A stretch of DNA of 64,000 nt from Mytilus edulis (taxonomy: Eukaryota), in contig NC_092351.1 of assembly GCF_963676685.1 (NCBI RefSeq), positions 13,144,001 through 13,208,000 of the forward strand, given 5' to 3'. The notes under the pieces were generated by a model, which made no database searches, was not told the origin of the DNA, and saw only the letters and a program-made list of their open reading frames with translations. Numbering within the stretch: the first letter of the stretch is position 1; each line of letters begins with the position of its first letter. Below, one piece after another: positions 13,501-19,500 of the stretch. The position numbers and the translations under genes were made by a program.

Positions 13501-16500
13501 CGGTCAACTTTTTTTAAGCGTTATGAAAACATTGAAACTTAGAGTTTACATGACCATTTATTACGTTTTGAAAGCACTGTATTAATTGACTGTACTAATA
13601 CGTTTTATAATTAGCTATAAAACCAGGTTTAACCCACCACTTTCTTCTGAAAATGCCTGTACCATTTAAAGGAATATGGCAGTTGTTATTCACTTTTTTT
13701 AGTTGAATGATAGTGTTCGATTTTGTCAGTTTTTATATATTTTTTTTTTAATTTGCCTCCAGTTCAGTATTTTTGCTAAACGTTTATACTAGATTTTATT
13801 TTTTTGATTTTAATTACGTTTTTTTCGTTTTCAAATTGTATATAAACAGTTTAGTTAAGAACAAAGATTGATTTTGCAGTAACAATCGGTAGGTGGAAGC
13901 ATCTCTATAATGGTTTTCAACCCACCATTTTTTCCTTTAAAAATGCCCTGTACCAAGTCAGGAATATGGTCATTGTTATATTATAGTTTGTTTCTGTGTG
14001 TATTACATTATAACGTTGTGTCGTTTGTTTTCTCTTATTTTTGAGTGTAAATTCACATTGCGATAAGACGTGTCACGGTACTTGTCTATCCCAAATTCAT
14101 GTATTTGGTTTTGATGTTATATATATATGTTATATTTGTTATTCTCGTGGGATTTTGTCTATATGTGTTACATTTTAGTGTTATGTCGTTGTTCTCCTCT
14201 TATATTTAATGCGTTCCTCGGTTTTAGTTTGTTATCCCGATTTTGTTTTTTGTCCATGGATTTATGAGTTTTGAACAGCGGTATACTACTGTTGCCTTTA
14301 TTTGATCTTCCGTAAACTAAACCTTTACAAGCACCTTTGAATATAGATTTCCGTAAAACATTTTATGTGCGTATGTTTGTGTCGGGGATGAAAAAAAAAT
14401 GTTACCTTGTTATTTTTCGACTTGTAGGATGAATCATTACTTTTTGAACCATAACTTTGTTGTAATACCTTAAATAAAACACATGAAAACAATATTATGA
14501 GATACTAAGTGTTTGCTACACTTTAATTTAAGTTGGTGTATCAGTGATAATATCAAATGCTAGTTTAAGCTATTCTACTTATTGTCAGCTTCATCACATT
14601 CTTCTTAATTCTAGGTATAGACATATAAGTATGTACGCTCGTGTATTGTTTTATTTCTGTGTAAACTTCTTTGACTATTTGATACAATAACAATAGAGTA
14701 TGTTGCATTCCGTGATCACAAATGAAGAACATTAATATAAATACTCATCTGTTTTGACATTTTCGCTGTACACGGCTGACTACGTTTTTTCTTCAAATTT
14801 CTATATAATATTTCAATGAGAGTAAATTGTATCTCATTTGTATACGTATATATCTATTCAATTAAAAACCCTATAATAAAGCAATTGTTGTTCATGTTAA
14901 TAAATTAAACAACAGTTAGAGAGAGCTTAGTTGGTATCTTTGGCTGTGTGTCTCGCAATGCTTTCAAACTCGTACTTTATTTGGCCTTGTTAATTTTGTT
15001 TAATTCGATTGATACCGAGGACTCTTTTGTAGACGATACACGCGTCTGGCGTACACAAATGAAATCGTATTATCTATACAGAGTCTATATCCCATTTAAT
15101 ATATATTTGATTTAATTAAAATCAGCGGTCAAGTTAAAAAAAACACAACTCACAGAACAATCATGATTACACGTAAATTCACTTTACGCGAAGTATAAGC
15201 CTAAGAAGTCTCCATGAATTGATATTAATTTATAAGGGATATACCTCTGATACTAATGGTTCATTCTCGGTCTCAGCAGGTGTTACATCGTTTTTTATTA
15301 AAGAAAAGACAACAGCACTGAAAAGAAAAAAAAACATTGGACCAATACAAGTGGTGTACTTACAAAATCAAGACGAACACTTGTAAAAGACCTAATGATG
15401 CCAATGCTTTAAAGGAGTAGGTCCAGTAAGACCCCTTTTTGGCCCCAAAATATTGCAGTTTTACAAAATTGTTAAGATGTAAACTTTTAGTTATTTATTG
15501 GACAATAGAATGCTTCTGCTACATAAATATGGGCTGTTTTTGACAATACAATGCACATATATCGGGTACTAGCACCATTAAGTCATGCTAAATTACTGAA
15601 ATCTTCACAATTCTAGCATTTTAGTTAAATTTTAGACAGTTTTTGTGTGAAACGAAAGTGGCCGCATTCGTGTGTATCCTTAATATTGAAATGTCAGTTG
15701 TATTTTACGATAATACATAACATATATAAAGGTTGAGAATGAACACGGATGCGGCCAATTTCATCTTTGACAAACATCATCTGAAAAGTGACATTTTTCG
15801 GCATATTTGGTAGATTTTTCATATTTGAGCTTGAATCGGGTTGTTTTTAATGACTAAATCGGTTAAAATCTTTCACATACATTAATTGATTCAAATGGAA
15901 TAGACACTTAAGTGTTTAAAAAGTGGTCAAAATCTTTCGTAAGATGAACCTGAAATTTGAGGCCAAAATCGGTCCTTACCGGACCTACTCCTTTATTAAG
16001 ATGGCAGTGAAAATATAGTCCCTTTAGTTCGATTGTTTTACTGCAATCGTCCAATTATACGTTGAAACATTACTAAATTGTTATTTTGTATTAATCAAAA
16101 TCAAAATTGGTCTGGTCATTGCACTTCATCCTTTACATATTTCGACAATGATCTATGACATACACTATCATTATCATGGATAAATAAATAGCTTTTTATA
16201 TAGTGTTGAGACATTTACATTGTTTGAGATCGACGTATTGTCAAAAAAACTACAACAAAAAAAGAATTAGATAAAATATGCACAAGATTCTGTTATATCC
16301 AAACGAATTTTAGCTTTGCATATATAGAATGGAGGCATATATATTGTTGAATGTTGTAATTATTTTGGACCTTTTGGATTATTGCTCTTCATCTTTTATA
16401 TAAGCTTTGGATTTCAAATATTTTGGCCACGAGCATCACTGAAGAGACATGTATTGTCGAAATGCGCATCTGGTGCAACAAACTTGGTACCGTTGATTTT

Positions 16501-19500
16501 ATTACTACCACTGGGTCGATGCCTCTGCTGGTGGACTATTAGTCCCCGAGGGTATCACCAGCCCAGTAGCCAGCACTTCGGTACTGGCATGAAAATGCGG
16601 ATTTTTTGTGTTATTAAAATTTGCTGTTACAAAATATTAGAAATTATTATAAATTAAGGAATGTATCTCCCTCATGCAAAGCTCTGATTCCTTTCACGAA
16701 TTTGGCTATACTTTTTGGACCTTTTGGATTATTGCTCTTCATCTTTTATATAAGCTTTGGATTTCAAATATTTTGGCCACGAGCATCACTGAAGAGACAT
16801 TTATTGTCGAAATGCGCATCTGGTGCAACAAACTTGGTACCGTTGATTTTATTGTAAACTGCCCTCTAAATGTCTTTTGGTTATTGACCTATTCCAAATA
16901 ATTTTTTTCCATAAATAAAAGGTAAATGATCATGTCATTTTATAAAATAAGTACTGTAACTATCCTTACTTTTTATTGACAATATGCGTAATTAATCATT
17001 ATGCATGTCATGACATTCTTTTCTATGTTATTTTACTATACAGACCTCACAACACACAAAGCGACACCAGCATAATTCATGGCCTTGTTGTTTGGTACTG
17101 CCTTCGTCACGCCAAAAAATCCAAATCTACCAAATATATGAGATAGTGAAAACCCTATCAGAAGGGAGAATTATAGTAAGTATAATGAGAGAAACGTAGA
17201 CATCCCTTCTCTACATATATGCTGGACTAATTTTTGTCTCGAAATGTTTTAAATGTAGATTAAATGTTTTTATTTTCTATAATTTTGACCCTTTAGTTTT
17301 TGAAATGAAAAACAAAATCCAAATAGAACTTTAAGTGCACCAATAATAGTATCATAATTGGTCTAGTATCTTGAGAGTTGTAAAAAGACAACAATCGAAT
17401 ATTTTCTGCATTGAATTATATACACAAATTATGTCATTACCTTGAGGATGACAGAAAGTGATTTTTTGTCTGTGTACTGCTCAAACTATAGATACAGCGG
17501 AAAATATAAGAATGAAGTGAATCAATATTACCTTTACTCGTCATTTTATATTTCCCAAGTCGTCCAGTAAATATAAGATGAAATGATGCAATATTACCTT
17601 TGCTCGTCATTTTATATTCTCCAAGTCGTCCAGTAAATATAAGAATGAAATGGAGCAATATTACCTTTGCTCGTCATTTTATATTCTCCAAGTCGTCCAT
17701 TAAATATAAGAATGAAATGAAGCAATATTACCTTTGCTCGTCATTTTATATTCTCCAAGTCGTCCAGTAAATATAAAACAGAAATGAAGCAATGTTACCT
17801 TTGCTCGTCATTTTATATTCCCCAAGTCGTCCAGTAAATATAAGAATGAAATGCAGCAATATTACCTTTACTCGTCATTTTATATTCTCCAAGTCGTCCA
17901 GGTTCATATTACTGTACTCTTTTAAAAATGCATTTGATTCATAAACACAAACCTGCCAGTAGACCATCCACTGAGAAGATTGACCATTGACCAAATACAT
18001 AGCCCAAGACCTAAACCAACCGTCTTTACTATTGGTACAACACATATGTTACCTACAATATAATGCATATAAATATGTGTATACCAATAATAAAACTGCG
18101 AAAGGATGGTAGGCGCTAAAAATTACCGTCGGCCGTAAAATATAACATGCATGTCCAGAATGATAAAAATTTATATGTGAAAGAAAAATGACAGCTTTGC
18201 TCGTTGCTAACAAAGTGACTAGGAATTTATAACAGTATAATGTAATCCTACTCGTATGGACTGTTGTCAACTTTAGTTCATGATGTTGCCCTTTCATACA
18301 TTTTGGAAACTGATGTTTTTGATCTTAAGGGAATACGATACGGTTTTGATCCCGTATTTGCATTTTGATAAAAATTTCCATATAGACTATTTTTACCTGA
18401 TTAAATAAAATATCAAATATGTGATAATAATATACCTTCATATGCTACTTTTTGAGTAAAATGAGGTCGAAGTTTTGTATATTTGTATATTTGCTGAAAA
18501 TTTGGAATTGTGGCCGTTTTTTTCCTTTCGAAAGGAAGACATAACTTTTTTGTTTTAAAAGATAAACAAAAATGTTTTTTTGTTAAATAATTTGTAATTT
18601 CTGTATTTTATACATTTTTTATTCAGAAATAACTCATATTCATTTCATTAAATGTTCATGAATGTATAAAAAAACATAATTTTTTGCTGTATATTTATCA
18701 AATTTAAAACAATTGCACTATTTACGTTTTCATGAAAATTGGCACACATAATTTTCCCGCAGAATCAATCCAAATGACTTTTTAAAAAGAGGGGTCCATG
18801 AACTCGTTTTCAAGTTAAATAAGTTTAAATGATAACAATCAGTCGAAAACTCCATCTTTTCCCGATAAGTCATAGTTTGACGTCGCGAAAATAACAATTT
18901 ACGTTAGCAACGTCATTACCTCCCCTGTAAATGTATCGTATGCCCTTAACACACACACTATACATTTATCATAACATTTCCATAGACAAACATTTAAAAT
19001 GATAATAGCAAATGTTTATACCTATCTCCCAAACCACACCTCCAATCATTGCCATAGGAAAGAACGGTGGTTGATTTCGTATTAACTGCACAACAACGCC
19101 TGCAAGCATTGCACCGCTGCACATTATCCACTGGAAAAACATACCTGAATGTAAAGTTTGTACATAAATTAAGTAAAAAATACCCGAATGTAAAGGATAA
19201 CTTTAAAACAAAGCTTTGTCCAAAAATCGTTTTCTGCCATGTAGGTTGACACTCATTTCATCTAGAAAAACAAATATGCAATCAAAATAATATATTTATT
19301 TAAATTATCTCAACACCCTCTTTTGGTAAAATATTGTTTTTTTTAACTTTTGAGTTTTTGCATCCTTTGGTTGTTGTCTCATTGGCAATAACAAATCATT
19401 TATATGAAGATGCCACATCCTGGAATATAATATAAGTATGTACCTTTCGGTTTTTCTGATCAATACGTGTGAACATTTGTGTATTTATGAAATATGAAAT

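Follow-up and report, generated by a model that had tools for sequence, protein, structure and literature searches.

What kind of element is the 491-bp tandem insertion at 16363-16853 of the Mytilus edulis stretch considered here, and by what route did it reach its present place? The stretch (G000:C8:13144001-13208000 of a 1.37-Gb assembly, 64,000 nucleotides (nt) in all and hereafter the window) had been read in an earlier note, made from the letters alone, as holding a retrozyme with two hammerhead ribozymes exactly 350 nt apart. Our analysis supports that reading: the element is very probably a retrozyme without long terminal repeats (non-LTR retrozyme) of a subfamily that we call A, sister to the experimentally characterised mussel element Mg353 (subfamily B). 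The note's remark that such elements had been reported in mussels was also right, and the element class, its host genus and its circular RNA (circRNA) biology are already published (PMC7229834). Our finding mostly confirms published biology: small circRNAs are abundant in mussels, and their DNA counterparts are tandem repeats with hammerheads, present by the thousand in mussel genomes. The parts of the insertion are as follows.

16363-16853, plus strand: entire 491-bp insertion, made up of 1.4 family-A retrozyme units of 350 nt (sequence, repeat search, genome comparison)
16363-16503, plus strand: direct repeat 1, 141 nt (repeat search)
16713-16853, plus strand: direct repeat 2, 141 nt, one mismatch at 16801 (repeat search, sequence)
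16433-16476, plus strand: hammerhead 1, type I, predicted cleavage after C16470 (layout, motif pattern, covariation, RF00163)
16783-16826, plus strand: hammerhead 2, type I, predicted cleavage after C16820, with T at 16801 (loop II) where the family has G
16462-16469, plus strand: helix-III octamer ATGCGCAT, a perfect palindrome and candidate intermolecular helix; second copy at 16812-16819
16471-16820, plus strand: 350-nt monomer bounded by the two predicted cuts and expected as the sequence of the circRNA; 38.6% GC, without a long open reading frame (ORF)
16512-16580, plus strand: central block, ~93% conserved between A and the natural B copies of this genome (72% alike overall), forming stable hairpins of the predicted fold
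16821-16853, plus strand: 33-nt 3' tail that closes with ...GATTTTATT, the point at which family insertions invariably end

The hammerhead core is made up of C3-U4-G5-A6-N7-G8-A9, G12-A13-A14, an A15.1-U16.1 pair, H17 and a G10.1-C11.1 pair. All of it is present in the first ribozyme, where stem I pairs GCAUCA (16433-16438) with UGGUGC (16471-16476), CUGAAGA lies at 16439-16445, helix II is GACA/UGUC (16446-16449 with 16455-16458 across a 5-nt loop, G16446 pairing with C16458), GAAA lies at 16459-16462, and helix III together with the cleavage-site C is TGCGCATC at 16463-16470. Position C17 is 16470, and U16469 and C16470 close the type I core; within one molecule, helix III consists of A-U and U-A pairs around GCGC. 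The second hammerhead, identical in its core, sits at +350. A degenerate motif pattern matched twice in the window and not at all in 100 shuffles, and the Rfam model Hammerhead_1 (RF00163), a check that the earlier note had itself proposed, matched 16433-16476 over its full length (positions 1-45) with 31.2 bits and an E value of 1e-6 in a 71-nt search. Rfam did not list the hammerhead for the whole window at the gathering threshold or for 601 nt at E<=10; these blanks on longer searches are due to speed filters and the score cut-off, not to absence of the motif. The note's wording, a minimal type I hammerhead, holds for the type only, since 'minimal' is reserved in the literature for variants found in Penelope-like elements (PLEs), retrozymes having a 2-bp helix III capped by a tetraloop.

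Comparison between families points to the same structure. We aligned six hammerheads from three families (A, B and a third, C), which amount to only three independent lineages. Under the hammerhead structure 95.8% of the cells were paired, versus 14-44% in controls with slid partners, and compensatory changes fell in 5 of the 12 pairs and in all three helices, helix I being open and the other two closed, as in type I. This pattern indicates that the hammerhead fold is under selection. The eight bases from A15.1 to U16.1 are palindromic in every family (AUGCGCAU in A, ACGCGCGU in B, AUCCGGAU in C), and in family C the inner pair has changed from G-C to C-G with the palindrome kept. Since a hairpin cannot accommodate this inner pair, its being conserved suggests that two ribozymes pair with one another. 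A pair of 55-nt ribozymes is predicted to cofold at -30.3 kcal/mol with an 8-bp intermolecular helix III, compared with -9.3 kcal/mol for each alone. The ribozyme thus probably works as a dimer, a 'double hammerhead' of the kind that is classical in newt satellite 2 and in PLEs (literature cited in PMC7761336), and the palindrome-keeping covariation of helix III is comparative support for dimeric cleavage in an invertebrate retrozyme.

The two 141-nt direct repeats form the one direct-repeat family returned by the repeat search, with a start-to-start spacing of 350 nt and 99% identity, and their sole difference is the second base of loop II, G at 16451 and T at 16801, just as the earlier note had it. 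They are the mere overlap of a 1.4-unit tandem, in which monomer positions run from 243 to 350, then from 1 to 350 and finally from 1 to 33. By arithmetic, the predicted cuts after 16470 and 16820 give the 350-nt monomer that the note had foreseen, and this monomer is non-coding, its longest ATG ORF being 72 amino acids (aa) when circularised. What the note called a complete unit does contain a full monomer with two ribozymes; it is better described as a 5'-truncated insertion of 1.4 units with a standard 3' end. No ORF exceeds 91 aa anywhere in 16363-16853, and none encodes a reverse transcriptase, with or without a GIY-YIG endonuclease. The retrozyme is therefore non-autonomous, and only its insertion architecture resembles that of PLEs. 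With its GC content below the ~45-50% that marks metazoan retrozymes, its lack of coding capacity and no LTR, primer-binding site (PBS) or polypurine tract (PPT), the last two not having been searched for specifically, the monomer has the properties of a non-LTR retrozyme. The 1.4-unit repeat is absent from the output of Tandem Repeats Finder, and a scan for bacterial promoters and terminators, whose models are not relevant to an animal genome, was empty.

Membership of a large family is evident from the rest of the assembly. The 350-nt monomer gave at least 1,073 first-look candidates, of which 40 were scored and yielded 158 matches at 97-99% identity on contigs C1-C14. The genome-wide count that the note had suggested came to 4,519 exact family-A ribozyme cores, and a looser pattern covering the A and B cores found 22,354; reversed-pattern controls found none in either case. 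Among the first 100 cores listed on C1, grouped by eye, about two thirds of the loci had one core and about one third had two to five, so that loci with two intact ribozymes, as at 16363-16853, are common. A 350-nt period, arrays of 1.1 to >9 units among the first loci, and thousands of cores are the tandem-repeat form of a metazoan non-LTR retrozyme, a class whose repeats measure ~150-450 bp. Two further insertions in the window are of the published mussel type.

12132-12462, plus strand: family-B (Mg353-type) insertion, 5'-truncated, with one hammerhead at 12386-12429 that has an A-A mismatch in helix II; 3' end approximate
26545-26717, plus strand: family-B insertion, 5'-truncated, with an intact hammerhead at 26638-26681 and a 42-nt tail ending ...GATAACTATTA

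The published primer 110R, as its reverse complement, matches 16546-16574 with one mismatch and 12153-12181 with none. The family-A monomer aligns end to end, at 72% identity, with a natural family-B monomer of the same genome (locus L030), a figure that refers to natural Mg353-type copies rather than to the printed Mg353 sequence. The ribozyme of these natural copies equals the published one except in loop II, and the Mg353 ribozyme (CUGAUGA-GUC..GAC-GAAA-CGCGCGUC) occurs at 26638-26681. Family C, found via RNA reads at locus L032, has a unit of ~550 nt and the ribozyme ACAUCA-CUGAAGA-GACA..UGUC-GAAA-UCCGGAUC|UGGUGU, and its junction pattern has 757 exact matches in the genome.

The ends of the copies bear on how they were inserted. 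Among the first loci there are 12 distinct arrays, and every one stops at monomer position 33-35 (...GATTTTATT[A][C]), while their 5' starts lie at ~345, 124, 174, 199, 210, 243, 249, 265, 291, 308, 326 and 330, and all 32 arrays with a terminal piece among the monomer matches end at position 33-38. So as not to favour copies close to the query, we also took the first 20 loci with a single core on C1; these unselected loci all end 33-37 nt past the cleavage site, with 5' starts from position 39 to 326. In total, the 3' end falls 33-38 nt beyond the cleavage site in 52 of 52 examined insertions and their starting points vary, and family-B copies end at the homologous place (...GATAACTATTA), 42 nt past theirs. 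Since the fixed end lies beyond the cleavage site, the ribozyme does not make the template's end; this fits a start at an internal point of a circle or a multimer. Differences per 350 positions number 0.55 within an array versus 3.5 between arrays, in a sample biased to young copies. By analogy with PLE insertions, which are 5'-truncated partial tandems with a 30-40-bp tail (PMC8557442), a fixed 3' end with a variable 5' start is the signature of target-primed reverse transcription of the Penelope-like kind. For the GIY-YIG domain family, which stands in for endonuclease-bearing PLEs, the assembly gave 858 first-look candidates. Neither the 5' truncation nor the reverse-transcription start site is mentioned in the mussel-retrozyme literature that we searched. 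The invariant 3' terminus and variable 5' truncation tie retrozyme integration to Penelope-like target-primed reverse transcription and define where the reverse transcriptase starts.

Two further observations concern particular insertions. Loci L006 (G000:C13:36458058) and L015 (G000:C3:221903) carry family-A insertions with identical flanks on both sides although they lie on different contigs, which is a segmental duplication or an assembly duplicate carrying the element. Diverged (69-83%) fragments in opposite orientation adjoin the 3' ends of two family-A arrays (G000:C7:30683209-30683306 and G000:C6:65837898-65838309); either nesting within older copies or inverted arrangements like those of PLEs may account for them.

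RNA was sought in three raw runs (X21, X22 and X24, with the same species label as the best DNA match; 6-18% of each was read), mapped to 16163-17053. None of the listed sequence sets containing the element is recorded as RNA. Depth over the element was ~10-450 in the three runs and 0 in both flanks, and in X21 one strand outnumbered the other by 3-4:1, which, for a library of the ordinary deoxyuridine triphosphate (dUTP) type, would be the plus strand. The family is transcribed, with some plus-strand bias, and expression is seen at the family level only. The copy at 16363-16853 has private variants (T at 16383/16733 and C at 16483/16833, where the family has A) that are almost absent from the reads, so the RNA comes from other copies. 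After 16503/16504 there are loose ends on which the reads agree little, showing that some reads stem from terminal copies and run on into many different flanks. Since it lies antisense in a TMEM144-like intron, its flanks are without RNA and its private variants are nearly missing from the reads, this copy is most likely a silent end product.

A mechanism can be proposed, whose steps we infer from the published sister family and from general knowledge of hammerheads and PLEs. Plus-strand transcripts with at least two ribozymes would pair through the palindromic helix III into a double hammerhead, and each ribozyme would cut after its C17 (16470 and 16820). A host ligase of the RtcB type would join the ends of the linear RNA to give a circle. 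A reverse transcriptase acting in trans, most likely that of a PLE, would start the complementary DNA (cDNA) at a fixed site ~34 nt past the cleavage site and would proceed over a varying length, going round the circle or following a multimer, leaving 5'-truncated tandem arrays of ~0.1 to >9 units. The more specific proposal, that the start is sequence-defined, with a circular or multimeric plus strand as template and the cDNA always beginning at ...UUAUUA, 33-42 nt past the cleavage site, and that the double hammerhead formed by the covarying 8-bp palindromic helix III is obligate, is put forward tentatively, its chances being somewhat short of even. A 2020 review names no conserved motif that points to the machinery mobilising retrozymes (PMC7761336), so that, if the proposal is true, the fixed 3' terminus common to A and B would be the first handle for finding the partner reverse transcriptase.

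Several observations weigh against a self-cleaving, circularising retrozyme of this kind. The RF00163 score is 2.8 bits below the curated gathering score of 34. Self-cleavage and circularity have been published for sister family B and would extend to subfamily A by analogy only. No pile-up of read ends occurs at 16470/16471 or 16820/16821 in the three RNA runs, the depth has no dip at 16470/16471, so that the RNA is mostly continuous across the cleavage site, and the reads that cross it fit circles and, the reference being a tandem, uncleaved multimers equally well. Joints were looked for in the RNA reads of the three runs and none was found. Minus-strand reads are substantial, the strand ratio being ~1.3-1.5:1 in X22 and ~1:1 in X24. 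The label 'highly self-paired' does not suit the family-A monomer, whose fold is no more stable than that of shuffled sequences (z -0.87 linear, -0.61 circular, by thermodynamic folding). Target-site duplications (TSDs) reach 5 bp at most (0-5 bp) and are often ambiguous. None of the 12 GIY-YIG loci compared is a partner PLE with the retrozyme hammerhead or 3' end; one of them, L045, merely holds nested family-B and family-C copies.

How far do these points favour other explanations? Retrotransposition might proceed from linear multimeric read-through transcripts rather than from circles, the hammerhead having some other role or riding along with Penelope-like machinery. The template end that is not made by the ribozyme, the lack of cleavage ends among the RNA reads and the suggestion that hammerheads may be no more than parasites of PLEs (Craig et al. 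2021, PMC8557442) are what speaks for it. Yet most of the RNA that the sister family accumulates in mussel tissues is circular (PMC7229834), arrays of up to at least nine near-identical units are simply explained by going round a circle, and core and helices are intact in thousands of copies; we therefore regard a linear template as unlikely. That the hammerhead is an inactive look-alike within an ordinary satellite, or a repeat resembling short interspersed elements, seems very improbable: its Rfam score under the gathering threshold, the fact that the hammerhead is not the minimum-energy fold of an isolated 55-mer (-5.2 versus -9.3 kcal/mol) and a helix III of only 2 bp within one molecule are outweighed by the presence of every core nucleotide, by compensatory changes in all three helices across families, by in vitro cleavage of the near-identical family-B ribozyme (PMC7229834) and by dimer formation, which in the predicted cofold rescues the weak helix III.

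Two alternatives concern the present copy rather than the family. Its 1.4-unit structure could stem from a local tandem duplication of DNA after insertion of a single unit, instead of from a multimeric cDNA, and such a duplication would also account for both repeats carrying the private variants at monomer positions 13 and 263. The 3' terminus, however, lies exactly at the family end and the 5' end is arbitrary, as in 51 other insertions, and the same architecture recurs in arrays of every size, which leaves a local duplication scarcely any probability. The copy could, on the other hand, be an active source of the 350-nt circRNA, given that two intact ribozymes flank a full monomer and that a few X22 and X24 reads carry T at 16733; but neither flank has any RNA depth, nearly all reads lack T at 16383/16733 and C at 16483/16833, and no promoter is known for retrozymes (PMC7761336), so that we hold this to be distinctly improbable.

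Some side observations concern the central block and family C. The block homologous to 16512-16580 in a family-B copy is 12132-12200; outside it, A and B are ~60-70% alike. Its fold consists of two hairpins, a long one and a small one (the latter CCAG..CUGG in A and UCAG..UUGA in B, with one compensatory pair), and it may serve as a cis element for reverse transcriptase or ligase. A transfer RNA (tRNA) origin of the retrozyme is not supported, ARAGORN having found no tRNA-like part between 12000 and 27000, despite GGGTCGATGCC in the central block, which resembles an RNA polymerase III B box. The family-C hammerhead at L032:1515-1558, nearly identical to that of family A except for its helix-III palindrome, repeats at +549 and +568, some spacings being ~1.1-1.2 kb, and the sequence just upstream of it, GTTTCGATCCC, resembles a tRNA B box. 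Family-C RNA gave 313 (X21) and 385 (X22) reads at one junction, more than family A gave, and strongly biased to one strand; these reads appear as loose ends at window positions 16784 and 16825.

The insertion lies within a gene of the TMEM144 kind. By exon-wise matches to the Pfam domain TMEM144 (PF07857), the window holds a tandem row of three minus-strand paralogues, which span 11285-19163, 26695-32225 and 39969-49463. Two exons bracket the retrozyme.

17934-18068, minus strand: nearest upstream host exon, TMEM144-like, PF07857 positions 65-110 (Pfam match)
11285-11590, minus strand: next detected host exon, PF07857 positions 213-314 (Pfam match)

The earlier note had placed the element in intron 4 of TMEM144-A; its location inside a TMEM144-like gene stands, and is best given as between these two matched exons, the gene being on the minus strand and the ribozymes antisense to it. 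The window's three retrozyme copies share the plus strand and run antisense to the TMEM144-like genes (with n=3, no test of orientation bias); they are therefore not expected to cut host pre-mRNA. The recent insertion that the note had proposed is plausible, with one difference in 141 positions between the repeats and family copies 97-99% alike; the flank is unique, and no empty site by which to date the insertion was found in the tandem TMEM144 paralogues of the window or in the whole assembly. For annotation, the three copies should be masked as retrozyme repeats. Elsewhere in this region, the family-B insertion at 26545-26717 ends ~20 bp inside the low end of the last-exon Pfam match of the second paralogue (26695-27102), two TMEM144 Pfam matches contain an in-frame TGA that may reflect an intron or a defect, and a 67-bp tandem repeat (six copies, 92% matches) occupies 17502-17901, ~650 bp downstream of the retrozyme.

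How does family A compare with other hammerhead-bearing elements? Plant LTR retrozymes, reportedly described by Cervera, Urbina and de la Peña in 2016, are likewise non-autonomous, and in them too the segment between two hammerheads goes on to form a circRNA that is an intermediate of transposition. They differ in having type III hammerheads, ~350-bp LTRs, a PBS and a PPT, 4-bp TSDs and mobilisation by Ty3/Gypsy elements, none of which are features of the mussel element (for PBS and PPT, outside any specific search). Hammerheads of PLEs, on which Cervera and de la Peña in 2014 and Lünse, Weinberg and Breaker in 2017 are said to have reported, are closer: they are of type I, have a weak helix III and act as dimers, and the insertions are 5'-truncated partial tandems with a 30-40-bp tail. 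Family A, in contrast, has no reverse transcriptase or endonuclease ORF, and its unit is 350 nt rather than the 3-4 kb of PLEs.

The satellite 2 hammerhead repeats of newts and salamanders, reportedly the subject of work by Epstein and Gall in 1987 and by Forster et al. in 1988, share with family A tandem repeats of ~330-350 bp, a type I hammerhead, a palindromic helix-III loop and double-hammerhead cleavage, and both linear and circular RNAs of them have been found. They belong to another phylum and have no sequence similarity to family A outside the core. Retrozymes have also been described in the axolotl (PMC7229834), and amphibian motifs need dimeric constructs for efficient cleavage, whereas most invertebrate type I motifs cleave efficiently as monomers (PMC7761336).

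The closest relative is the mussel element itself. In Mytilus galloprovincialis, ~5,000 type I hammerheads occur in repeats of ~350-390 bp (Cervera & de la Peña 2020, NAR 48:5054; PMC7229834), with two ribozyme families distinguished in Supplementary Figure S4. A cloned repeat self-cleaves co-transcriptionally in vitro at ~0.1 per min, the circRNAs are abundant by northern blot, and circles were cloned by divergent reverse-transcription PCR; the construct Mg353 and the primers are printed in the supplement (PMC7229834). Family A departs from Mg353 in its core (CUGAAGA instead of CUGAUGA), in helix II (GACA/UGUC instead of GUCU/AGAC), in the helix-III octamer (AUGCGCAU instead of ACGCGCGU) and in a shorter 3' tail of 33-35 nt, compared with 42 nt in the Mg353 type; and whereas cleavage and circRNA have been demonstrated for the latter, family A is known here from sequence and RNA reads. 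The two are nonetheless alike in a non-coding, low-GC unit of ~350 nt, in tandem arrays from dimers to multimers, in a type I hammerhead whose 2-bp helix III ends in a tetraloop that is palindromic, and in the central block common to both.

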